Positions 205-45,507 of a stretch of 64,000 bases of DNA are shown in pieces. Location: NCBI GenBank assembly GCA_033442325.1, contig JAWQFM010000025.1, forward strand, positions 36,635-100,634, read 5' to 3'. A program made the position numbers and the translations under genes. Every line of letters starts with the position of its first letter. The first letter of the stretch is position 1. Origin of the DNA: Salpingoeca rosetta. Its lineage: Eukaryota; Protista; Choanoflagellata. The notes below the pieces were generated by a model, which was not told the DNA's origin, did no database searches, and worked only from the letters and a program-made list of their open reading frames with translations.

Positions 205-1161
205 TCACCTGCTGCTGCTGGTGGTTCCAACCGAAAATGCAACTTGTGCTGTCGCCACCTGTTCCCAGCAGCAACCGCCAGCAGCAGTGGGCGATGGGTT
301 GGTTGGCTGGTTGGTTGGTTGGTTGGCTGGTTGGTTGGTTGGGGAATGTGTTCAGCAGCAAGTGATGGTGGTGCATTCTCTGCCGCTGCTGCATCGGCGG
401 TAGAGGGTGTGTTGGCTGCTGCTGTTGTTGTTGTGATGGCCGCCAGGGAGGGCGAGAAAGAGAGGGAAAGACGAACAGTGACTGCAAGGTGGAGAATGTG
501 CAGGGGTGCAGGCAGTTGTGTGTGTGAGAACGAAGAGAGACAGCGCACCAAGCAAGGCAAAACAGGCAGCCACACCACACACATGCATGCGCAATGATGT
601 GGAGCAACAAGGGGAGACAGGAGCAACAAAGACAACGAGCACAAACACGCACACTGGTGCGGTGTTCACCACACTCACACACATACATGTACAGTGATGC
701 ACTCACGTTGTTCATCGCTTGCTTGCTTGCTTTGTGGTGTGGTGTGAGCTGCTGCTGCTGCTTCCACAGCCGCACAAGCGTGGCTGGACGGTCAGTCACA
801 TGGCAGCGCCCGTCTGTTCATCCCACCAGAGCAGTGGTGGTTGGTGCAGGAGGGGGTGACAGCTGCTGGCTCAAGGGCCCTATGTGTGGCGACAGCAAAA
901 AGAAGGAAGGGGAAACGAGCAAGGGAGGAAGGTGGTGGTGGTGTTGAGGATGAGAGGAAAGGGTGTGGGCAAGAAAATGAGGAGGCGGTGATGATGGCGT
1001 GTGGGTGGGTGGAGAAGACAACCCGCACGCCGACACACACACACACACACACACACCTGCCTGGGTGATGCAGTGGTTCGATCACCATTCATCCGTCAGC
1101 ATGTAGTCATTGTTGGTTGGTTGGTGGGAGTTGCCCACTGGCTCGCGCATCAGCCAGCACC

Positions 1162-1194
<33 letters not shown>

Positions 1195-1318
1195 AATACA
1201 TTCATCTGCACGCACCACAAACAAACAAGCAACAACGGCAGCAGTGAGTAGCCTGTCACAGACAGACACAGAAAGAAGAAAGACAGGAGGAGGAGGATGA
1301 GCAGAAACACAACACCGT

Positions 1319-1370
<52 letters not shown>

Positions 1371-1510
1371 TGGCTGTGATGGTGGTTGATGTCATTTCCC
1401 CCCCCCCCTCTGTCATGTGTGTGCTGCTCACTGGTTGAGAGGAAGCATGATCCATTCTCAGGGCTGCCCCTGCACGACGGTGGCTGCTGGCAGTTGTTCT
1501 GTCACCACAC
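205..1510 (-). pseudogene. Possible degenerate WD40-like gene fragments
   Basis: Short minus-strand segments, some ending at GT donors, read LLLGTGGDSTSCIFGWN, TTALVG*TDGRCHVTDRPATLVRLWK and DYMLTDEW*SN. They resemble WD40 strands and contain in-frame stops; weak evidence. Confidence 0.2.
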
Positions 1511-1947
1511 AACGGTGAGTGTGTGTGTGTGAGAGTGTGCATTGGTGTGTGCCACACGCAGTGGTGTGTGTTGGTTGTGATCCAATCACTCATGCACGGA
1601 TGGATGGATCGATGGTGGTCCACATGTGTGTGTGGCTGTGTGTGCACGATGACAGCGTGCGCTGTGTTGTTGTTGTTGATGGTGGTGGTGGTGGTGGTTG
1701 CTGTGCGCAGTGTGCAAGGGGAAGAAGGGGAAGAGGAGGAGCACGAAGTGGGAGGAAGAAGTGGGAGCACTCCATCTCACCCTCACCTGTCGATGGATGG
1801 GTCATTCATGTGGTCGTTGGTTGGTTGGTTGGTTGGTTGGTTGTGCGTGGTTCATCACAGGAGAAGGAAATGGACAACGATGGAAGGAAGGAAAGAAGGA
1901 TGGAAGGGAGAAGGGGAGGAGAGAGACGGTGTGCACACCCTCCCTGC

Positions 1948-1997
<50 letters not shown>

Positions 1998-2390
1998 GTG
2001 CGTCAGCGAGGACGACGAAGGGAAGGAAAGGAAGGAAGAGAAGGAACGTGGCACGCACAACCACCAATGTGTGTGTGTGTGTGCACGAACCAATGACACA
2101 TCCCCCACCTCACTCCACCTCACCTCATCTCACCTGCCTGTCAGCGATGACGACGACCATGATCACCATCACCATTCCCACCACCATCACACACACACCA
2201 GCTGCTCAGCAGAAGAAGAAGAATGAAGCAACGGCGAGTGGATTGGTTGGTTGGTTGGTTGGAAAGCAGAATCGGTTGTTTGCTCGTTTCTGCTTGCTGC
2301 TGCTGGTTTTTGGTGTGTGTGCGATTTTCCTCTTCTTCTTGCTTGCTTGCTGGCTCTGCGTTGATAAATTGCTTGCCTTTCACCGCTCTC

Positions 2391-2510
2391 GGCAACGCTC
2401 ATACCAACGGGATCACGCCCGCTCTCGTCCGATCGCGGAAGCTAAGCCCGTTTGGGCCCGTTCAGTACTGCCGTGGGTGACCAGGCGGGAATCACGGGTG
2501 ATGTTGCTAT
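2391..2510 (+). rRNA. 5S rRNA gene (single dispersed copy)
   Basis: GGCAACGCTCATACC...CTCGTCCGATCGCGGAAGCTAAGC...AGTACTGCCGTGGGTGACC...GGGAATCACGGGTGATGTTGCT is colinear with the eukaryotic 5S consensus and ~120 nt long. 5' GGCAAC pairs with 3' GTTGCT and internal helices are compensatory. Confidence 0.95.
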
Positions 2511-2515
2511 CTTCC

Positions 2516-2523
2516 TTTTTTTT
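2516..2523 (+). terminator. RNA polymerase III oligo-T terminator of the 5S gene
   Basis: Run of 8 T just after the 5S 3' end. Confidence 0.8.
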
Positions 2524-2742
2524 CTCTCTTCATATGGGGTGCTGTAGCTGCTGTGGCGCTTGCTGTCTCTCCTTCACTTCCCTCTTCTCTCTTGTCTTAG
2601 CTTGTTGCTTGGTTCGGTTTACTTCTTCTTCTTCTTCTTCTTTGCTTGCTGACTGAGTTGCTTCAACTTGGGGGTGACGAGGTGGTGGCGTGTGTTGGCT
2701 CATCTCCCTCTCTCTTGTTGCTTGACTGTAGCGTTGCTTTGC

Positions 2743-2780
<38 letters not shown>

Positions 2781-3176
2781 TTGCCTGACATCGTGTCTTC
2801 TCAACGCGTTTACTTCCATGTACTGACGCAGAGGAATCACACACAGGTGGGCTGAACTAATGAACTAGTGACAGAGCTGATCTTGGTTACGCTGTTAAGA
2901 CATCTTCGTCCTCTCCTCATCCTCCTCATCCTCATCATCACACGCAAACACATCACATGGGGGCATTGTCCTTGGCCGTCTTTCGTCGGTGGGCGAGGGG
3001 TGTTGCACCATACAGACTCCTGCATCACATCGTGTGGCGTGTCATTGGGCGTGTCGGACGCCAGCCCTTCCACTTGCATCTTCCCCCTGCGAGCATTTGT
3101 GTGTGTGTGTGTGCCCATGAAGGTGTTGGTGGTGGCAGCGAGATGTTGTGAGGTGACCGTGCTGATTCGCACCCCT

Positions 3177-5389
<2,213 letters not shown>

Positions 5390-6612: not shown

Positions 6613-6996
6613 TGTGTGTCTGTGTGTGTCTGTGTCTGTGTGTGTGTGTGTCTGTGTGTGTGTCTGTGTCTGTGTGTGTGTGTGTGTGTCTGTAACGCTT
6701 TAATGTGTGCTAATATAATTCTCACCACCTCCCCCCCAACACTCGGAAGACCATAATCTCTCCATATGCATTAGTATGTTCTATGGATATAAATAATCTC
6801 CCCGATAAACATTACATAAAAAACAACCNNNNNNNNNNNNNNNNNNNNNNNNNNNNNNNNNNNNNNNNNNNNNNNNNNNNNNNNNNNNNNNNNNNNNNNN
6901 NNNNNNNNNNNNNNNNNNNNNNNNNNNNNNNNNNNNNNNNNNNNNNNNNNNNNNNNNNNNNNNNNNNNNNNNNNNNNNNNNNNNNNNNNNNNNNNN

Positions 6997-7045
<49 letters not shown>

Positions 7046-13783: not shown

Positions 13784-16700
13784 ATGGGTGACACCCACAG
13801 CAAGGCAGAGGGAGAGGAGAGGGCGAGGGAGGAGGTGGAGGCCTTGCTGGCACAGACGAAGCTGAGGGGTGAGGTGAAGGACAAGATCAGGGCCATCGCC
13901 AACAACACGGGTGGGGATAAAGTGAGGTGAGTGCATTACCAGAACGCCACATTGCCCTGTTGGAGTACAAAGCGCACTCTGCATGTACCGCTCTCTGCTT
14001 GCCTTGCTGCTGAGGGTTTTTGTGTGGCGCAACCACGATAGCCATGGTGGTCTGTGACTTGTTTGCCTGCTTGTCTCTTGTTCTTGGCGCACATTGAATG
14101 GCAGCTTTTGGCGGGATCGCCTCGGCGTCAGTGGGGCGAAGGCATTGGCAGAGGCGCTCAAGGACAACACCTGTCTCAGAGTGCTCAAGTTCGTACCGTG
14201 GTGATTGAGCTGCGCGTGGCATGCAGTTCTGGTGGGGCTGCTTCATGCTGGTTGTTGGCCGCCCCCTTCTCCTCTTTGCGTGCTCGTGGCATGTGTTTTA
14301 ACCGCCCCCTTTCGGTCTTGGCAGCCTGTGGGACAACGTCATCGGTAATGAGGGCACTGTGGCGTTGGCAAAGATGCTGAAGCACAACACGACCTTGACA
14401 TCACTCGAGTGAGTGTGGACACATGCATGTGTGGATGGAAATGGGCTGCGTCACTGTCGTTGTGTAATGCCCTGTGATTCGCGAATGCCCGTGTATGGGG
14501 GTGGGTTCAAGGACAATGCTTCCACCCACCCACAGCCACGCACATGCACTCACCCTTCCTTGTCCATGTGGCATCATCGCCTTGTGTGGCATCATACCAT
14601 TTTGACAGCCTGAAAAGCAGCCGCATCGGTCCTGTGGGCGCTGTGGCGTTGGCAAAGATGCTGAAGCACAACACGACCATGGCAACACTCATGTGAGTGT
14701 GGACACATGCATGTGTGGATGGAAATGGGCTGCGTCACTGCCGTTGCACAATGCCCTGTGTTGTGGGTGTGGGAATGTGCGTGTGTGGTAGGTTGGGTTG
14801 GACGACTGTGTTACCGCCCACAACCACGCACACGCTCTCATTCCCTCTTCCTCACCCATGTGACAACATCACCCTGCGTGGCATCATCCCTTCTCGACAG
14901 CCTGGACAACAATGATATCGGTTCTGAGGGTGCTGTGGCGTTGGCAAAGATGCTGAAGCACAACACGACCATGGCAACACTCATGTGAGTGTGGACACAT
15001 GCATGTGTGGATGGAAATGGGCTGCGTCACTGTCGTTGTGTAATGCCCTATGATTCACGAATGCCCGTGTATGGGGGTGGGTTCAAGGACAATGCTTCCA
15101 CCCACCCACAGCCACGCACGTGCACTCACCCTTCCTTGTCCATGTGGCATCATCGCCCTGTGTGGCATCATACCATTTTGACAGCCTGAAAAGCAGCCGC
15201 ATCGGTCCTGTGGGCGCTGTGGCGTTGGCAAAGACACTGCAGCACAACACGACCATAACATCACTCGAGTGAGTGTGGACACATGCATGTGTGGATGGAA
15301 ATGGGCTGCGTCACTATGATTCGCGAATGCCCGTGTATGGGGGTGGGTTCGAGGACAATGCTTCCACCCACCCACAGCCACGCACATGCACTCACCCTTC
15401 CTTGTCCATGTGGCATCATCGCCTTGTGTGGCATCATACCATTTTGACAGCCTGAAAAGCAACCGCATCGGTCCTGGGGGTGCTGTGGCGTTGGCAAAGA
15501 TGCTGAAGCACAACACGGCCATGACGACACTCATGTGAGTGTGGACACATGCATGTATGGATGGAAATGGGCTGCCTCACGTTGCACGTTAATGGCGTGC
15601 CGTGGGTGTGCGAATACACATGCGTGGTGGGGTGGGTTCAAGGACAATGCTTCCATCCACCCACAGCCACGTACACGCACTCACTCACTCTTCCTCACCC
15701 ATGTGGCATCATCGCCCTGCGTGGCATCATCCCTTCTCGACAGCCTGGACAACAATGATATCGGTTCTGAGGGTGCTGTGGCGTTGGCAAAGATGCTGAA
15801 GCACAACACGACCTTGACATCACTCGAGTGAGTGTGGACACGTGCATGTGTGGATGGAAATGGGCTGCGTCACTGTCGTTGTGTAATGCCCTGTGATTCG
15901 CGAATGCCCGTGTATGGGGGTGGGTTCAAGGACAATGCTTCCACCCACCCACAGCCACGCACATGCACTCACCCTTCCTTGTCCATGTGGCATCATCGCC
16001 TTGTGTGGCATCGTACCATTTTGACAGCCTGAAAAGCAGCCGCATCGGTCCTGTGGGCGCTGTGGCGTTGGCAAAGATGCTGAAGCACAACACGGCCATG
16101 ACGACACTCGAGTGAGTGTGAACACACATGCACATATGGATGGGAATGCGCTACTTCGCTACCGTTGCACCTTGTCACGTGTTGTGGGTGTGCGAATGCA
16201 CATGTGTGGTTGGTGATCTCAACGACAATGCTTCCATCCACCCACAGCCACGTACACGCACTCACTCACTCTTCCTCACCCATGTGGCATCATCGCCCTG
16301 CGTGGCATCATCCCTTCTCGACAGCCTGGACAACAATGATATCGGTTCTGAGGGTGCTGTGGCGTTGGCAAAGATGCTGAAGCACAACACGACCATAACA
16401 TCACTCGAGTGAGTGTGGACACATGCATGTGGATGGAAATGGGCTGCGTTTCTGCAATTGCACTTTTATCCCGTGCTGTGATGTGTGTGTGCGCATGCAT
16501 GTGTGTGGTGGGGTGGGTTCAACGACTGTGTTGCCACCCACAGCGATCATCACGCACTCGCGCACTCTTCCTCGCCCATGTGGCATCATCGCCCTGTGTG
16601 GCATCATGCCATCTTGACAGGCTGTACAACAACAATATCGGCAATAAGGGCGCTGTGGCGTTGGCAAAGATGCTGAAGCACAACACGACCATGACAACGC

Positions 16701-19700
16701 TCAAGTACCTTAAGTACGCGTATGTGGGCACATGCATAACAATCGATAGAGAGGGAAAATGCGCGGCGTCACTGCCGTGCTATCATTGCTGCCGTCCGGA
16801 CATGTTGCAAACAAGTAGGGCGTATTCCTACTAACTCAAAGCTATCCTGTTCTTCCTGTTGCCAACTTACCTGTTGTTCCATCTCATCTAACAGCGTTTC
16901 CCACAATCATATCACGGAGCCTGGCATGGTGAATGTGCTGAAGCAGCTGCAAGGCATGGATGCCCAAGCCAAGATTCGGTGAGGTCTCGTGTGCTTGCGA
17001 CCTTGCTCCACCCACACGTACCAGCTCAACTTCAGGCGACGCTCTTTCATCTCACATTCCCTCTTTACCGCATCACAGGCTGTTCGAGTTCAAGCTCGAG
17101 TCCTCCACCTCCGTCGCCCGCACACTGGCCACGCTCCGCACCAAGCGCCCGGACATCAACGTCGTGTTCAGCAAGTGGTGAGTTCTCACAGCAGTAGAGT
17201 GGAGTGACAGGCTTGTTCTTACTTTAAAACCCCTCCCCACCCCATCTTCTTTCCACCCTTCACGCTGCAGCCTTCTTCTCCTCAGGTATTTCGAAACAGA
17301 GGACGAGTTCGACTCTTCCGCCAAAGCTGCCTACCAAGACCAGCTCGATCTCCTGAAGCTGCTTGAGACAGGCTCCGTTCCTCTGGAGACAGCAAAAGTG
17401 TTTGTGTGCGGCGATTACGGCATCGGCAAGACGACGATGATCAAGTCGCTGGACAGTGATGATCATGAACCCCAAAGTCAGGCAGAGCAGCCACCCAACG
17501 ACCCAGATCGGCCGGATGAGCGCACACCTGGCATCCGCGTGTGTGACATGAAGCTTCAAGACACCACAAGCCAAGGCAACGAAGGTGGCAACGCTGCATC
17601 TCTTCGCGTGTACGATTTCGGCGGGCAGCTCGCATATAACGCCATCCACACGCTGATGATGTCGGACCGCTTCGCTGCCTTTGTCGTCTGCGTCGACCTC
17701 TCCCAACCAGAACAGCACGTGAAGGATCGCGCCAGCTACTGGCTGCAGTTCATCTGCACGCGACTGAAGCAGGGCATTGCGGCTGCCACAGCAACGGCAG
17801 GCGTTGATGCCATGGAAGAGGTGAAGCCGCGCGTCGTCATCGTGGGCACCAAAAGGGATATTGCTCGCAAGATAGGGCTTGTTGGAGCACATTGGCAGCC
17901 CACTTGGAGCACAGCGATGATCGCATACCTGCAGCACACCTTCGGCCACATCATCGACATCCAAGACAGCCTCATATCTCTCAACTGCCATCAGGGAGGG
18001 GATGCGGGCTTTGATCAGCTGCAAGCCCACTTGGTCCAGCACTGGCGGTGGCTGAAATCACTCGAGATGCTGGTGCCAAAGGTGGTGGGGATTGTTGGCC
18101 CGAGCATTGAGTCCGCTCGGCAACAACACCCAAGTTGGACGGTGTCTGAACTCCTGGAGTACATCCGACGCAGTAGCAGTGATGAATTCGCCCCCACGTC
18201 TGCATTGGACGAAGGCGTATTCCATCGCATTCTCAGGTGCGGTTGTCTGGCGGAGAGTGAGGGAGGACTTGTTGCCTGCTTCAGCCTCGATGTGTTCCTT
18301 TGACTGCGTTGTTCGCTGCACCTCACACTCAAGCACATTCCTTGTTCACAGATACCTCCACTCCCGCGGTGATCTTCTCTGGTACTCTAATACGCCATCT
18401 TTGGCCAACCACGTCTTCGTTTCCCCAAACTGGCTCTTGCACGATGTGATGGGCAAGGCGTTGCAGCCAGAGGGCGTGGCTTGTGGAGGCCTCCGACCAG
18501 AGAACGGGGTTGTCACCTTCAGTGATATCGAAGCATCTTTCCGCGGCATCGCCAGCGCTGACCTCGTCATCAACGTGCTGCAACACGCCCTCCTTTGCTT
18601 TGAGCTGCCACCTGCTGACGATGGCCAACGACGATTCATGCTGCCGAGTCGCGTGGAGCGCTTGGTTGGCGTTGGTGACGCCTGGCCACATGACGAGTGG
18701 CCTCTTTATGCCGGGCGGCGCATGGTGGTTGAGGACGAAGCATTGGCTCTTTGGCGCTCCCGCCTGGGTTCTTCCCGCACGTGCAAACACGACTCCACGA
18801 GTCGTTTGGAACTACACTGCAAGTGTGGCAAAACGCCTTCTTCTGCCAGCGCGATGGCGTGCAATGCCTTGGGCTGCTCCGAGGCGGCCGTGAAGTTGAC
18901 GTGTGGGTCCGAGCACTCGCTGGCGCCGAGTGCAACGCCTGGAGCTGCATGACGCAGGTGAGGACTCGTGAAAACTTATGAGCGTGGGTGCCATGTTCCT
19001 GTGTCTTTGTGGATTGATGCCTTTGCCGAACACAGCTGCTTGAACCATTAGCCATCTGGTGTACTCATCCACTTGCTTGTTTCTTGTTTGTTCTCCTGCC
19101 ATGCCGCCGCAGGTCTTCGATTTGCTGCAGGAAGAGGCGCATGGCATCGACCACGTAATCCTTGTGCTCAGTGCCAATCACTTGAAGCAGCACAAGCAGT
19201 ATCCAGCCGGGTATGACATTACTTCGCTCCACAACAAGCGTGCGAGCGATATTGTGACGTCCACCCACCACAGACCAGGCTGCTCCGTCATGGAACGTGT
19301 TGGGGATCTGCTTGTGCACAATCCCGTCCTGACAGCACCCTGGCACCAATCTGGCCACGAGTGGCACCATGCTGCCTGGCGGCTCGACGACAGCTTTGAC
19401 CGCCAGTTGCAGTGGACTGGGCCTGGCAATCATGACGTGTACTCTGCGCCACTGCCAGCCGACACCGACTTGTATCGGTGGATAGAGAACCAGATGGGAC
19501 TGGGCCTCACCCTGTCACGCGTGGAGGTGACCAAGTCCACCACAATGCTGCGGGCGTTCAAAGCGCAAGTGGAGCGGTCGGCGACGCGCCGTGGCAGTGC
19601 AAACCCGTCCAACCCCTTCAACAAGGACTTTGGGGCTGGTGATCCGGACAAGCGCGCCATGCTCGACCGACTTAAGACGCAGTTTGCAGAAACACCCGGT

Positions 19701-20249
19701 GACGTGAACCACGTCAGCGTGCTGATTGGTTTCCACGGGTGTGCTGAAGACGTGGCTGACAACATCACGGCCACGGGCACCACCAACCTCAGCAGTCCAG
19801 AGGATCCAGGTTTCTTCGGCGCTGGTATCTACCTCACACCGCAAGCTAACTATGCTGCCGGGTACTCGACACGCCTGCTCACTGGCCACTGGCGTGCACC
19901 CAACACAGACGGGGAGCACTTGATGCTCCTCTGCGCTGTCAGTGTCGGCCTGGCGTACCCCGTCACCAGGAGGGCGGACTACACTGGGAAGATGCCGCCC
20001 CTCTGGGACGCCACAAACAACATGCTCATCCCAACATGTGATTTCTTTGGTAAGCCCTTGCACAGAGGATGCGACACCCACTATGCGCAGGTGACGAAAA
20101 GCATGCATTACCAAGCCACCCCCACACCTGGCACCCTTGGCTTTGAGGAGTACGTCGTGTCGCAGGAGGCACAGGTCCTCCCGTTTGCCAAGGTGTTTGT
20201 GAATGTTGACATGAACGCGTATTTGTCGCACTTGTCGACCCTGCCATGA
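13784..20249 (+). CDS. LRR-ROC-COR (Roco-like) GTPase fused to a C-terminal PARP-like ADP-ribosyltransferase; frameshift in COR (possible pseudogene or assembly error)
   Basis: Exon 1 13784-13926; eleven 84-nt LRR exons 14105-16978; exon 17079-17177; ROC exon 17286-18236 (GDYGIGKT, ERTPGI, VYDFGGQ, IVGTKRD); COR exon 18352-18957 (YLHSRGDLLWY, PNWL, LPPGFF) with an 8-nt insertion at 18743-18750; last exon 19113-20249 (FHG, FGAGIYLT, FEEYVV). Confidence 0.85.
14325..16704 (+). repeat. Tandem array of ~270-300 bp intron plus LRR-exon cassettes
   Basis: Exons at 14325, 14609, 14901, 15185, 15451, 15744, 16028, 16325 and 16621 are each 84 nt and share CTGTGGCGTTGGCAAAGA...CACAACAC. Introns are highly similar, most starting GTGAGTGTGGACACATGCATG. 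Confidence 0.95.
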
Positions 20250-20807: not shown

Positions 20808-22184
20808 TCAAGCGAGAGCGCGGACCAGGCGCCACACCCCACATGCAACACCGGCCACAAGCGCAGCGAGTGTTGTGGTAGCTGTGACGGCAGAGACGCG
20901 CGGGTGGACGACGGCGAAACGGAAGACCGCAAACGTTGTATCGCGCAGGAAGAGGCCGGTCTTGGACGTGGTGTGGAGCACCTGGATGGTACTGCGTTGT
21001 CGCTGCACAACCTTGTTCCACTTCGGAGCTGTTTGCTCGAAGAACTGCAGCAGGACGCATGGTATGTCGTGTGGCACTCCAAAACCTTCGTGTGGTGTGA
21101 GTGCATCCGAGAGCATGTCTGCGAGCTGAACGGCGTCAACCAGTGCCATGTTGGCACCGGCTCCAGCAAACGGGCTGACGGGGTGGCTTGCATCGCCTAT
21201 GAAGACAACGCGGCCTTGCGGGGGGATGCACATGCCGTCGCGACACGTGATCACACTTGCGGAAGGTGCAAGCAGCGCCTTGGCGATCAGCGGCTGCAGC
21301 TCATCACCGTACTCCGTCGCAGCGTCCAGTGCACGGGCCAGGAGCGCCTTGTCATGTTGCAGGGCGTCGCGTCGACACCTCGTGGTGTGTGAAGTGGGGA
21401 GAGCAAGGCCGACCAAGACGCGGTTGTTGCCCTCATCAGCAATAAACACGGACGTGCCTCTGCGGCCGCACACGCTGCCATGTCTGCGGCGAAGCGCAGA
21501 AGGGAGGGCTGCATCGGTGTCATCAACGTCCACCGTGGCACCAACAATGATGGTGTCGAGGAAGTTCGGTGTCCAGGTCGGCACAAGGATACGACGCACC
21601 ACAGAACCCACGCCATCTGCCGCCACAAGCACGTCACCTCGAAGTATTGGGCCATCCGCCAACGTTACCTCCACACAATGCTGTGTGGTTGATGTCACGC
21701 CACTCTCGCCGCGGTGGTCCTTGAGATCAATCTGTTGTAATCCGGTCACCTCTGCACCAAACCGCACGTCTGCGCCGAGTGCTTGAGCTCGCTTTAGCAG
21801 CGCTTGCCAGAGGACGAATCGGTTGATGCGGATGCCACCACCTGCGTTGCTGAACACCTCATCCGAAGCAAGCACCTTGCGCACTTGCCGGTCCACCACC
21901 TCAGCCACAATGAAGCCCTGTGAGCCTGTTGCTGACGCACGCAATTCCTCCTCCTGCCCAAGGCGTGCGACCGCACGGATACCACCCACATCTGCGCGCA
22001 ACGACAGCGAGTGGCTCAGTTGTGTCTTCATTGCCTCTGCGGATGATGCCCGCTCCAACACTACCACCCGTGTGCCGTGTGCCTCCTGATGGGTGTTCTG
22101 TGTGCTCTTTTCTTCAAGAAGCGTGCAGGCAAACGCGAGGCCGCCGATGCCACCCCCAGCGACAAGGATCGTGACCATGGTCAT
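20808..22184 (-). CDS. FAD-dependent monooxygenase (group A, aromatic hydroxylase-like), intronless, C-terminal hydrophobic anchor
   Basis: Rossmann ILVAGGGIGG, DG motif VLVAADGVGSVVR, GD motif VFIGDASHPVSPFAGAGANMALVDA; 458-aa uninterrupted ORF. Confidence 0.9.
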   Translation of the reverse strand: MTMVTILVAGGGIGGLAFACTLLEEKSTQNTHQEAHGTRVVVLERASSAEAMKTQLSHSLSLRADVGGIRAVARLGQEEELRASATGSQGFIVAEVVDRQVRKVLASDEVFSNAGGGIRINRFVLWQALLKRAQALGADVRFGAEVTGLQQIDLKDHRGESGVTSTTQHCVEVTLADGPILRGDVLVAADGVGSVVRRILVPTWTPNFLDTIIVGATVDVDDTDAALPSALRRRHGSVCGRRGTSVFIADEGNNRVLVGLALPTSHTTRCRRDALQHDKALLARALDAATEYGDELQPLIAKALLAPSASVITCRDGMCIPPQGRVVFIGDASHPVSPFAGAGANMALVDAVQLADMLSDALTPHEGFGVPHDIPCVLLQFFEQTAPKWNKVVQRQRSTIQVLHTTSKTGLFLRDTTFAVFRFAVVHPRVSAVTATTTLAALVAGVACGVWRLVRALA

Positions 22185-24324: not shown

Positions 24325-25625
24325 TGAGTGAGTGTACGTGTGTACGTGTGTCTGTGTCTGTGTCTGTGCCCGTCTCTCTGTCCCTCACCCCTCCCCCCCC
24401 CACACACACCACCCCATCCTCCCCCCCTTCCAGGACTGGGCGTCGTCGTTGGCGAAGAAGAGGAACGATGCTCGCCGCGCCATCCTGAAGGCGTCTNNNN
24501 NNNNNNNNNNNNNNNNNNNNNNNNNNNNNNNNNNNNNNNNNNNNNNNNNNNNNNNNNNNNNNNNNNNNNNNNNNNNNNNNNNNNNNNNNNNNNNNNNNNN
24601 NNNNNNNNNNNNNNNNNNNNNNNNNNNNNNNNNNNNNNNNNNNNNNNNNNNNNNNNNNNNNNNNNNNNNNNNNNNNNNNNNNNNNNNNNNNNNNNNNNNN
24701 NNNNNNNNNNNNNNNNNNNNNNNNNNNNNNNNNNNNNNNNNNNNNNNNNNNNNNNNNNNNNNNNNNNNNNNNNNNNNNNNNNNNNNNNNNNNNNNNNNNN
24801 NNNNNNNNNNNNNNNNNNNNNNNNNNNNNNNNNNNNNNNNNNNNNNNNNNNNNNNNNNNNNNNNNNNNNNNNNNNNNNNNNNNNNNNNNNNNNNNNNNNN
24901 NNNNNNNNNNNNNNNNNNNNNNNNNNNNNNNNNNNNNNNNNNNNNNNNNNNNNNNNNNNNNNNNNNNNNNNNNNNNNNNNNNNNNNNNNNNNNNNNNNNN
25001 NNNNNNNNNNNNNNNNNNNNNNNNNNNNNNNNNNNNNNNNNNNNNNNNNNNNNNNNNNNNNNNNNNNNNNNNNNNNNNNNNNNNNNNNNNNNNNNNNNNN
25101 NNNNNNNNNNNNNNNNNNNNNNNNNNNNNNNNNNNNNNNNNNNNNNNNNNNNNNNNNNNNNNNNNNNNNNNNNNNNNNNNNNNNNNNNNNNNNNNNNNNN
25201 NNNNNNNNNNNNNNNNNNNNNNNNNNNNNNNNNNNNNNNNNNNNNNNNNNNNNNNNNNNNNNNNNNNNNNNNNNNNNNNNNNNNNNNNNNNNNNNNNNNN
25301 NNNNNNNNNNNNNNNNNNNNNNNNNNNNNNNNNNNNNNNNNNNNNNNNNNNNNNNNNNNNNNNNNNNNNNNNNNNNNNNNNNNNNNNNNNNNNNNNNNNN
25401 NNNNNNNNNNNNNNNNNNNNAGTCTGCTCCAGCAACCACAACACACACACATGCACTTACACACACACGCACACTCATACATGCACTCACACATGCACTC
25501 ACGCACACTCATACATGCACTCACACATGCACTCACACACACACATGCACTCACACACATGCACTTACACACACACGCACACTCATACATGCACTCACAC
25601 ATGCGCTCACACACTCACACATGCA

Positions 25626-31508: not shown

Positions 31509-31695
31509 NNNNNNNNNNNNNNNNNNNNNNNNNNNNNNNNNNNNNNNNNNNNNNNNNNNNNNNNNNNNNNNNNNNNNNNNNNNNNNNNNNNNNNNNNNNN
31601 NNNNNNNNATCATGTGTACATTCTACAAACAGTACAGCTAAGATTATACGGCTTGTACCCACCTGCTGTCCGAACTCTCAGTGGCGCCCACAGGT

Positions 31696-44447: not shown

Positions 44448-45507
44448 ATGGACGAGGAGGGTACAGGCCAGCCACTGGCCAAACGCGCGCACTTGACAAA
44501 GCCAGTGGCAGCGTCGTCGCAGTCGCAGTCGCAGTCGCAGCCGGATGTGCCATCGCCCGTGAAGACGCGCCCAAACTGGACGCTGGACGGCACGAGCGGC
44601 TGGCTGCTGGACACCAAGAGCGCCGTGTACATGGACCCGGAGTCGCGCATGTTCTTCAAGCTGGACGCGGCCGCGGGCAGCCTGGAGCCGTGCAGCTCGC
44701 CACCGGAGACGGGGCCCTCGGAGGCGCTGGTCAAGCGCGCGCTCGACTTCAAGGCGCAGTCCAAGCAGCAGAGGCCGGAGCAGACGCCCAGCAACACCAG
44801 CACCCGCGGCAGTGGCAGTGGCAGTGGCAGTGGTGGCAACACCAACACCAACACCGACACCAACAGCAACAGTGGTAGCACAGCAAAGCCGGCACTGCTG
44901 CGTTACAGTCCACAGACACGGAGAACGACGATGCAGAGACGACACGCGACGTGCCGANNNNNNNNNNNNNNNNNNNNNNNNNNNNNNNNNNNNNNNNNNN
45001 NNNNNNNNNNNNNNNNNNNNNNNNNNNNNNNNNNNNNNNNNNNNNNNNNNNNNNNNNAAAACCTCAGCAGTGTGTTATTGTGTGCGTATGTGAGTGTGTA
45101 TGCTGTGTTAGAAACAGGCGCGTGTTTTTCGGCGCGTGCGCGCCATCCTGCCTACCTCTTCTATCTTCTCCGCTCATCTTGTGTTTGTTCTTCTTTTCTC
45201 CCAATTTGCACGCATCAGCAACATCATGGGCGCTTTCAACCACGGCGGTCCCCTCAGCAACGTCGATGCCGACACTGCCGGTAATCGACAAGAAGCAGTG
45301 ATGGATGTGCACATGCAAAAGCGTGTGCATGTGGATGTGGTGCGTGCAGGTGCTGTGGATGTTGTGGATTGCGATGATTGGATCAAGGCGGTAATCCTCG
45401 CGCACGTGTCTGCATGCTGATGGTGCAGAATCGTTCCGTGATCTGAGCACATACCAGGAGCAGATCAAGCAGGTGAGCACGCTGTGTGTATGTGTGTGCG
45501 TGTGCGT

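Follow-up and report, generated by a model that had tools for sequence, protein, structure and literature searches.

Receptor genes in which each leucine-rich repeat (LRR) is carried by one exon have been described in brown algae and in animals. The LRR-ROCO genes of Ectocarpus and Saccharina encode one plant-type LRR per 72-bp phase-2 exon (Zambounis et al. 2012, PMC3341825; Teng et al. 2024, PMC11378527). Shuffling of these exons is marked by dead or inverted exons in introns, and the genes show diversifying selection and alternative splicing (PMC3341825; PMC11378527). In human NOD/NLRC genes, one 28-residue repeat of the ribonuclease inhibitor (RI) type is encoded per exon, with the border at a constant place in the beta-strand (Hoss et al. 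2019, PMC6642158). Here we analyze an array of one-LRR exons in the choanoflagellate Salpingoeca rosetta. It lies in a 64,000-nucleotide stretch of contig JAWQFM010000025.1, referred to as the window; coordinates are those of the window unless a contig label precedes them (C25 for the window's own contig). The eleven LRR exons belong to a 16-exon gene at 13784-20249 on the forward strand, in which they are followed by exons for a Roc GTPase, a COR domain and a PARP-type ADP-ribosyltransferase. The design thus follows a scheme familiar from the ROCO genes of brown algae and the NOD/NLRC genes of animals, and the Ectocarpus precedent for one-exon-per-LRR shuffling, cited in a preliminary description of the locus made from the sequence alone, holds.

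Built on the observed exon anatomy, mosaic, rate contrast, domain architecture and subtelomeric position, the explanation that we consider probable is that the array is the sensor of an LRR-Roc-COR-PARP protein from a duplicated, module-exchanged, diversifying and subtelomeric family. The protein would be a multidomain protein of cytosolic type, one of about a dozen S. rosetta paralogues. Its array would have grown through recent tandem duplication, after which the repeats would have been patched by unequal crossover or gene conversion, with exchanges at three kinds of places: a helix-coding core of 36 nt that does not vary, the first ~45 nt of the intron, likewise invariant, and the interior of introns. 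The junction module kept together in these exchanges would correspond to one ligand-facing rung, xxLxLxxNxIG. We infer that the protein is a putative sensor of non-self or danger, with an LRR face for binding variable ligands, and that the Roc-COR switch may license a predicted NAD+-dependent ADP-ribosylation.

With the brown-algal genes the S. rosetta gene shares the LRR-Roc-COR order, equal-length phase-2 one-LRR exons placed N-terminal to Roc-COR, and membership in a multigene family. Apparent diversifying selection on the LRR face and a proposed role as candidate immune receptors are also common to both. The repeats themselves differ, being of plant type with 72 nt and 24 residues in the algae, whereas those of S. 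rosetta are of RI type with 84 nt and 28 residues. The S. rosetta gene has in addition a PARP-type effector and a subtelomeric site, while alternative splicing is a feature of the algal genes. Inactivated or inverted intronic LRR exons, the algal hallmark, were not found: outside the eleven exons, neither strand of the 64-kb window contains an LRR-like exon or a GAVALA-type peptide. The closest match in exon anatomy, not mentioned in the preliminary description, is to animal NOD/NLRC genes (and RNH1/NLRP), which also have one 28-residue RI-type LRR per exon with the border inside the beta-strand. These genes combine a NACHT switch with C-terminal LRRs, in contrast to the Roc-COR switch, N-terminal LRRs and ADP-ribosyltransferase effector found here, and the likeness is one of exon layout as described.

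Two further systems resemble the locus in other respects. The var genes of Plasmodium, the VSG genes of Trypanosoma and yeast adhesin genes form subtelomeric multigene families that encode variable surface or recognition proteins and become mosaic through ectopic recombination. The S. rosetta family is like them in that variable-recognition genes are clustered near telomeres and are mosaics. It is unlike them in that they are parasite antigens or adhesins with expression switching, whereas the S. rosetta proteins would be intracellular-type sensors. In lampreys, the germline variable lymphocyte receptor (VLR) gene is incomplete and is completed somatically from flanking intron-less donor cassettes. 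VLRs (mentioned in PMC6642158) are likewise built of LRR modules that vary at residues of the concave face and are linked by short conserved stretches. In contrast, the S. rosetta gene is complete, is spliced conventionally at GT..AG borders and has no orphan cassettes within 64 kb.

Direct reading and script parsing of 14105-16978 (+) gave eleven exons of exactly 84 nt in phase 2. AG precedes and GT follows every one of them, in agreement with the coordinates, exon length and phase first described. Joining them to exon 1, with its ATG at 13784 and its donor at 13927, leaves the frame uninterrupted. Each exon comprises 1 nt, 27 codons and 2 nt, and therefore all introns are phase 2; any exon can indeed be skipped in frame, as had been noted. 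One 28-residue RI-type LRR is encoded per exon, with the array consensus LxxLxLxxNxIGxxGAvALAKMLKHNT. The general RI-type (LRR_6) consensus LxxLxLxxNxIgxxGaxxLaxxLxxN, of 28-29 residues, is readable in nine of the eleven. Pfam LRR_6 matches single exons only weakly (E 0.005-0.0075). Residue 1 of the exon falls at position 10 of the model, so that the intron lies inside the structural repeat. Tandem Repeats Finder (TRF) detects the array too, with periods of 266 and 293 nt. The exons and the introns between them are as follows.

14105-14188, forward strand: LRR exon 1 of 11, 84 nt, a divergent first repeat with donor GTTCGT
14325-14408, forward strand: LRR exon 2, LWDNVIGNEG..TLTSL
14609-14692, forward strand: LRR exon 3, start type A LKSSRIGPVG, end TMATL
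14901-14984, forward strand: LRR exon 4, start type B LDNNDIGSEG, end TMATL
15185-15268, forward strand: LRR exon 5, type A, end TITSL, core variant KTLQ, in a bin covered by contigs of sequencing run X7
15451-15534, forward strand: LRR exon 6, type A' LKSNRIGPGG, end AMTTL
15744-15827, forward strand: LRR exon 7, type B, end TLTSL
16028-16111, forward strand: LRR exon 8, type A, end AMTTL
16325-16408, forward strand: LRR exon 9, type B, end TITSL
16621-16704, forward strand: LRR exon 10, LYNNNIGNKG..TMTTL, donor GTACCT
16895-16978, forward strand: LRR exon 11, the capping repeat, VSHNHITEPGMVNVLKQLQ..
14409-16620, forward strand: eight homologous introns of two classes, alpha and beta, from their alignment

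Two combinations of intron end and exon start recur, both at the positions first reported. Type A (TTTGACAG followed across the border by LKS[S/N]RIGP) occurs at 14609, 15185, 15451 and 16028, and type B (CTCGACAG followed by LDNNDIGSE) at 14901, 15744 and 16325. The four exon ends (TLTSL, TMATL, TITSL and AMTTL) are likewise as first described. Type A is paired with TMATL, TITSL and AMTTL, and type B with TMATL, TLTSL and TITSL, so that all four gametes are present. The introns are 136, 200, 208, 200, 182, 209, 200, 213, 212 and 190 nt long, in order. Their description as near-identical is accurate for introns 2, 4 and 7 (97-99%) and approximately so for intron 5, which is 90% identical and carries an 18-nt deletion, but not for introns 3, 6, 8 and 9, which are 75-88% identical to the rest, or for the first and last introns, which are unrelated (46-63%). 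Introns 2, 4, 5 and 7 form the alpha class, each ahead of a type A exon; introns 3, 6 and 8 form the beta class, each ahead of a type B exon; and intron 9 is a beta-like mosaic ahead of exon 10 (LYNN). Each of introns 2-9 closes with a short direct repeat, GTGGCATCAT in two copies with a period of ~18 nt, directly upstream of its acceptor; the one in intron 9 (16572-16607) is also detected by TRF.

Recombination tests on the aligned units 2-9, with 44 parsimony-informative ungapped sites, confirmed that the mosaic is real. The pairwise homoplasy index (PHI) was 0.244 against 0.411 ± 0.020 after permutation, and none of 10,000 site permutations reached the observed value (P < 1e-4); the Hudson-Kaplan minimum number of recombination events was 7. 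The pattern of incompatibility is blocked. Incompatible site pairs make up 0-14% inside the 5' and 3' exon blocks and inside either half of the intron, and 45-73% between blocks. Intron class is perfectly linked to the start of the next exon (alpha to LKSSRIGP, beta to LDNNDIGSE), and the exon 3' end is linked to neither neighbor. Therefore, the piece that travels together is the 3' end of one exon, the intron, and the 5' end of the next exon. We call this the junction module, and it, not the exon, is the travelling unit. The preliminary description had treated the exon as the exchanged cassette, which does not fit these data, and its statement that starts and ends combine freely is too strong, given the perfect linkage of intron type to the start that follows.

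The blocks are re-paired at three kinds of places. Exons 3, 4 and 6-9 have a common invariant 36-nt core, where crossovers had been proposed at the outset, and exchange does occur there. It also occurs at the intron start, where the first ~45 nt of the homologous introns are invariant too, and inside introns. In alpha modules, the upstream exon ends differ at 19 of 138 sites whereas the adjoining introns differ at 22 of 1146 (Fisher P = 4e-9). This contrast is due to exchange and not to point mutation, because each of the end types is found again, identical, elsewhere in the array. In beta modules, the introns are 10-18% different while the exon starts that follow them differ at 0 of 31 sites, which indicates conversion tracts ending inside introns.

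The module has a structural counterpart. The intron splits a codon between the two leucines of LxL; the first two bases of this codon come from the upstream exon, and the third is C in 105 of 109 core-type exons of the family, among which the codon encodes 13 different residues. It follows from the position of the intron inside the structural repeat that each junction module encodes a complete xxLxLxxNxIG rung. In the textbook LRR structure (Kobe and Deisenhofer), this rung is the concave beta-strand and the loop that follows.

A genome-wide DNA search with a 576-bp exon and intron query, of the kind the preliminary description had called for, matched more than 100 places at 68-79% identity, introns included. 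From 20 fetched loci and the window we parsed 21 arrays, which together contain 130 phase-2 LRR exons, each exactly 84 nt long. Both a Roc and a PARP-type exon, with 55-75% identity, are present at about 12 loci in the genome. Other arrays form a second group, which has a different capping repeat and lies upstream of other COR-A/COR-B genes that are less similar in Roc, and the cap type of LRR exon 11 also closes the arrays of PARP-subfamily paralogues (loci L013, L027 and L028). The window array is a separate lineage, with the core AKML as opposed to AEML and the nearest other arrays 76-79% identical; its own shuffling is therefore internal. Across the family, half-exon modules are re-assorted within and between chromosome ends. 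Identical 30-nt 5' halves are joined to different 3' halves within and between contigs: four different ends follow the start LFGNDIGPEG on C34 and C28, and two follow LEGNSIGNQG on C27 and C13. Conversely, one identical 24-nt end (NTTLTWL) occurs with six different starts on four contigs.

Two of the other arrays have irregular layouts. At ~635-3472 of locus L023 (C30:75000-84999) there is a higher-order repeat in which the exon series LRDN../LDSN../LGSN.. recurs with identical peptides, and an extra identical LDSN exon lies at 7031, 3.5 kb downstream of the array. Locus L029 (C13:1706000-1715999, minus strand) has gaps of 1.0-1.6 kb in an otherwise regular array, between exons at 1821-1904, 3481-3564 and 4572-4655, and the exon LQYNSIGPEG..TMTLL occurs twice in it; the gaps may contain degenerate exons or an insertion.

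To compare sites we computed entropy over the 109 core-type exons, and Nei-Gojobori nonsynonymous (dN) and synonymous (dS) divergence for classes of codons. Most framework positions have an entropy below 0.4 bits, as opposed to 3.7, 3.1 and 3.5 bits at codons 2, 3 and 26 and 3.2 bits at the split codon. Hypervariable codons have dN 1.30 and dS 1.00, moderately variable codons dN 0.47 and dS 0.30, and framework codons dN 0.05 and dS 0.27. Thus, the concentration of variation in the xxLxLxxNxIG strand and loop, which had been read by eye, is borne out by both entropy and rates at exposed positions (dN 1.30 against a framework dS of 0.27). Introns are 82% identical within arrays and 71% between arrays, a between-array divergence of ~29%. 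A functional signal in the conserved introns was considered and rejected, as the 71% identity matches the framework synonymous divergence; the similarity of the introns reflects co-duplication and not constraint, because they diverge at about the synonymous rate. The exposed beta-strand codons change several times faster than either neutral yardstick (introns or framework dS), which indicates probable diversifying selection. An evolutionary diversification device consisting of germline recombination and diversifying selection is therefore supported, and sequence comparison refines it to a junction-module model in a subtelomeric family. That much of the receptor diversification mechanism first suggested stands; exon skipping, swapping and an active mechanism are not supported.

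Most members of the LRR-ROCO family are located close to chromosome ends. Of 25 arrays, on 17 contigs, 20 are at most 100 kb from a contig end, most of them at 13-55 kb, and in 19 of the 20 transcription runs away from that end. The fraction of the genome that near an end is at most 24.5% (assembly size 55.4 Mb), and the binomial P value for this concentration of arrays is 9e-9. The telomere repeat is TTAGGG, and a pattern search located assembled telomeres on C25 and a few other contigs. On the window's contig, the telomere is assembled as a (CCCTAA)n tract at C25:129-284. The array, at C25:50.7-53.6 kb, is ~50.5 kb from it and points inward. The S. rosetta genome paper describes subtelomeric regions common to most telomeres, and its passages on subtelomeres, telomeres and leucine-rich repeats do not name LRR-ROCO genes. 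Long TTAGGG tracts also occur ~13 kb (C24:13247-13552) and ~46 kb (C30:764104-764355) inside contig ends, and one at C12:1380104-1380211 has left-end orientation at a high coordinate; these inner tracts could be interstitial telomere repeats or mis-joins. The window itself contains runs of N at 6829-6996, 24497-25420, 31509-31608 and 44958-45057, two of them exactly 100 long, and the assembly is therefore scaffolded or masked.

The exons outside the array were placed by splice sites, frame continuity and tblastn with the annotated paralogue PTSG_13043. This 1170-residue protein contains LRR_6 (E 1.1e-17), Roc, COR-A and PARP domains, and its LRR domain is similar to chains of ribonuclease inhibitor, NOD2 and NLRP3 (E values of 1e-21 to 1e-30).

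13784-13926, forward strand: exon 1, ATG at 13784, 143 nt, ending in phase 2; aligns with the N-terminus of PTSG_13043
17079-17177, forward strand: exon 13, linker between LRR and Roc, from reading of the sequence; aligned to PTSG_13043 from residue 238 onward
17286-18236, forward strand: exon 14, Roc and the start of COR; Pfam Roc, P-loop GDYGIGKTT, DFGGQ, TKRD
18352-18957, forward strand: exon 15, COR; COR-A E 9e-7, with a change from frame 2 to frame 1 near 18735-18755
19113-20249, forward strand: exon 16, PARP-type ADP-ribosyltransferase and stop codon; Pfam PARP, AlphaFold model and Foldseek

Roc scores 39.7 bits with PF08477, above the cut-off of 27, and its G1, G3 and G4 motifs (GDYGIGKTT, DFGGQ and TKRD) are present. 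COR-A (PF16095) was found at E 5e-7 to 9e-7 and 29-30 bits, under the curated 35.3, with the frame broken within COR; the COR-A score of PTSG_13043 is likewise under the curated threshold. The Pfam PARP match of exon 16 is weak (E 3.7e-5, 23.8 bits against a cut-off of 26.7). An AlphaFold (AF2) model of the C-terminal domain has a mean predicted local distance difference test score (pLDDT) of 87.6 and a predicted TM-score (pTM) of 0.84, and Foldseek matched it to tankyrase 1/2, PARP1, PARP15 and PARP12 with E ~1e-10, probability 1.0 and a TM-score by target of ~0.7. In an alignment of 30 homologues, H208 of the H-Y-E triad is at least 90% conserved and Y240 and E346 are invariant. Model and alignment identify a PARP-type ADP-ribosyltransferase with a predicted ART fold and predicted activity. 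A Pfam scan of the large exons found only Roc, COR-A and PARP, with no NACHT or NB-ARC domain. The domain order LRR, Roc-COR, ADP-ribosyltransferase suggests an architecture of sensor, switch and effector. N-myristoylation is hinted at by the MG start but we do not claim it, as Asp at position 3 violates the usual motif.

The best library matches to the C-terminal domain are S. rosetta PTSG_13043 and PTSG_09169, and further homologues occur in Salpingoeca infusionum and Barroeca monosierra. P0006, a 1144-residue protein from metagenome contigs 4-6 kb long, carries a homologue of the PARP-type domain, with LRRK2-type ARM repeats as its fusion partner in place of LRR-Roc-COR; other matches are partnered with DUF4116 repeats or an F5/8 type C domain. 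From these varied partners the effector domain appears promiscuous.

Read evidence came from Logan contigs of 24 runs, three of them presumed RNA. Run X20 contains paralogue mRNA contigs. One of these passes from position 16696 through 32 other letters to 14925, that is 8 + 24 nt and two 84-nt exons in register. In another, a spliced paralogue-like contig, the exon 1 donor (between 13926 and 13927) is in use and leads to a paralogue-type second exon. These contigs show that family members are spliced as modelled; being from paralogues, they are silent on expression or skipping of the window copy. Contigs of run X7 match both flanks of the array exactly and also cover the unique internal bins 15079-15275, 15670-15866 and 16064-16260, and 18371-19268 is covered only by a paralogous X7 contig.

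Several points weigh against the reading of this gene as a diversifying sensor. Ligand binding, immune function, GTPase activity and ADP-ribosylation are predictions from sequence or model. The order and copy number in the array interior rest on the assembly, with which the short contigs partly agree: no single Logan contig spans the array, those of X7 break inside it, and together they confirm the flanks and some internal segments only. The rate comparison is one among repeats, at sites chosen after inspection, although choosing among neutral sites could not give a rate above neutral. No RNA contig cleanly matches the window array, and the three presumed RNA runs yielded only paralogue transcripts and genomic-like pieces. 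Finally, the COR exon is 8 nt longer than in four paralogues (C34, C2, C20 and C28) near 18735-18755, where tblastn matches overlap in two frames. The extra bases may mark a frameshift that has turned the copy into a pseudogene, or else a mistake of the assembly in the T run that adjoins the site; the scaffold is gapped, with runs of N. A very short intron was considered as the cause of the frame change and rejected, as 18735-18760 contains no GT..AG pair of suitable length.

A decaying subtelomeric pseudogene would account for some of these points. The array would then be intact because it is young, the mosaic would be neutral tandem-repeat turnover, and the copy would now be functionless. 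The COR frameshift and the lack of exact RNA contigs of the window gene in the three presumed RNA runs favor this, and the 97-99% identity of alpha introns implies that the duplications are recent. However, all eleven LRR exons have retained an open frame and GT..AG borders, framework codons within the window array alone have dN 0.03 against dS 0.12, and the Roc motifs and the PARP H-Y-E triad are intact. A change of one base in length would remove the frameshift, which adjoins a T run, and the assembly is a gapped draft. We consider a pseudogene unlikely.

It is more doubtful still that the number, order or half-exon pairing of the ~290-bp units is an artefact of collapse, expansion or chimeric joining. 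Such an error could be hidden in a scaffolded assembly with N gaps, in which units 2 and 7 are almost identical and the X7 short-read contigs break inside the array with none spanning it. Yet those contigs match both flanks and unique internal segments exactly, every unit has perfect frame and splice sites, and the same mosaic pattern is found in 20 other arrays on other contigs. An active generator of diversity, in which cells or clones would come to differ in their receptors, either because exons are skipped or alternatively spliced under regulation or because chromosome ends often exchange sequence mitotically or somatically, has in our estimate the slimmest chance: every exon is skippable in frame, the locus is subtelomeric with fixed orientation, identical modules occur on different chromosome ends and alternative splicing of modular LRR exons is documented in brown-algal ROCOs and human NLRP3, but no skipped or rearranged junction of the window gene was found in any run searched, the germline gene is complete and its splice sites are canonical, the window holds no orphan, inverted or splice-less donor cassettes, and the 76-79% identity of the nearest other arrays implies no recent exchange with them.

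Choanoflagellates have been described as lacking canonical nucleotide-binding LRR receptors (NLRs), in an analysis in which ROCO proteins are not mentioned (Richter et al., PMC6040629). Our literature searches on choanoflagellate ROCO with LRR, and on '84 bp' LRR exons, returned nothing relevant. If the diversifying-sensor reading is true, a large, fast-evolving and mostly subtelomeric LRR-Roc-COR family with an NAD+-using effector (PARP) would fill this gap as an NLR-analogous repertoire of intracellular sensors, and would show that one-LRR-per-exon RI-type modularity, as in vertebrate NOD/NLRC, is present outside animals. A bolder extension, which we hold to be quite unlikely, is that chromosome ends act as a recombination nursery of this ROCO-based repertoire, with subtelomeric module exchange via the exon core frequent enough that clones or strains differ, possibly with exon skipping in addition. 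The S. rosetta family offers a tractable model organism for testing how LRR repertoires diversify. The value of the present locus, more interesting within the family than alone, is as a clear and well-resolved case in which the unit of exchange is a beta-strand rung with an embedded intron.

Downstream of the ROCO-PARP gene and tail-to-tail with it, at 20808-22184 on the reverse strand, is an intron-less open reading frame of 458 codons with an N-terminal GGGIGG motif of dinucleotide-binding type. Beyond it, the interval from 22.5 to 24.4 kb of the window is full of long (TG/CA)n microsatellites.

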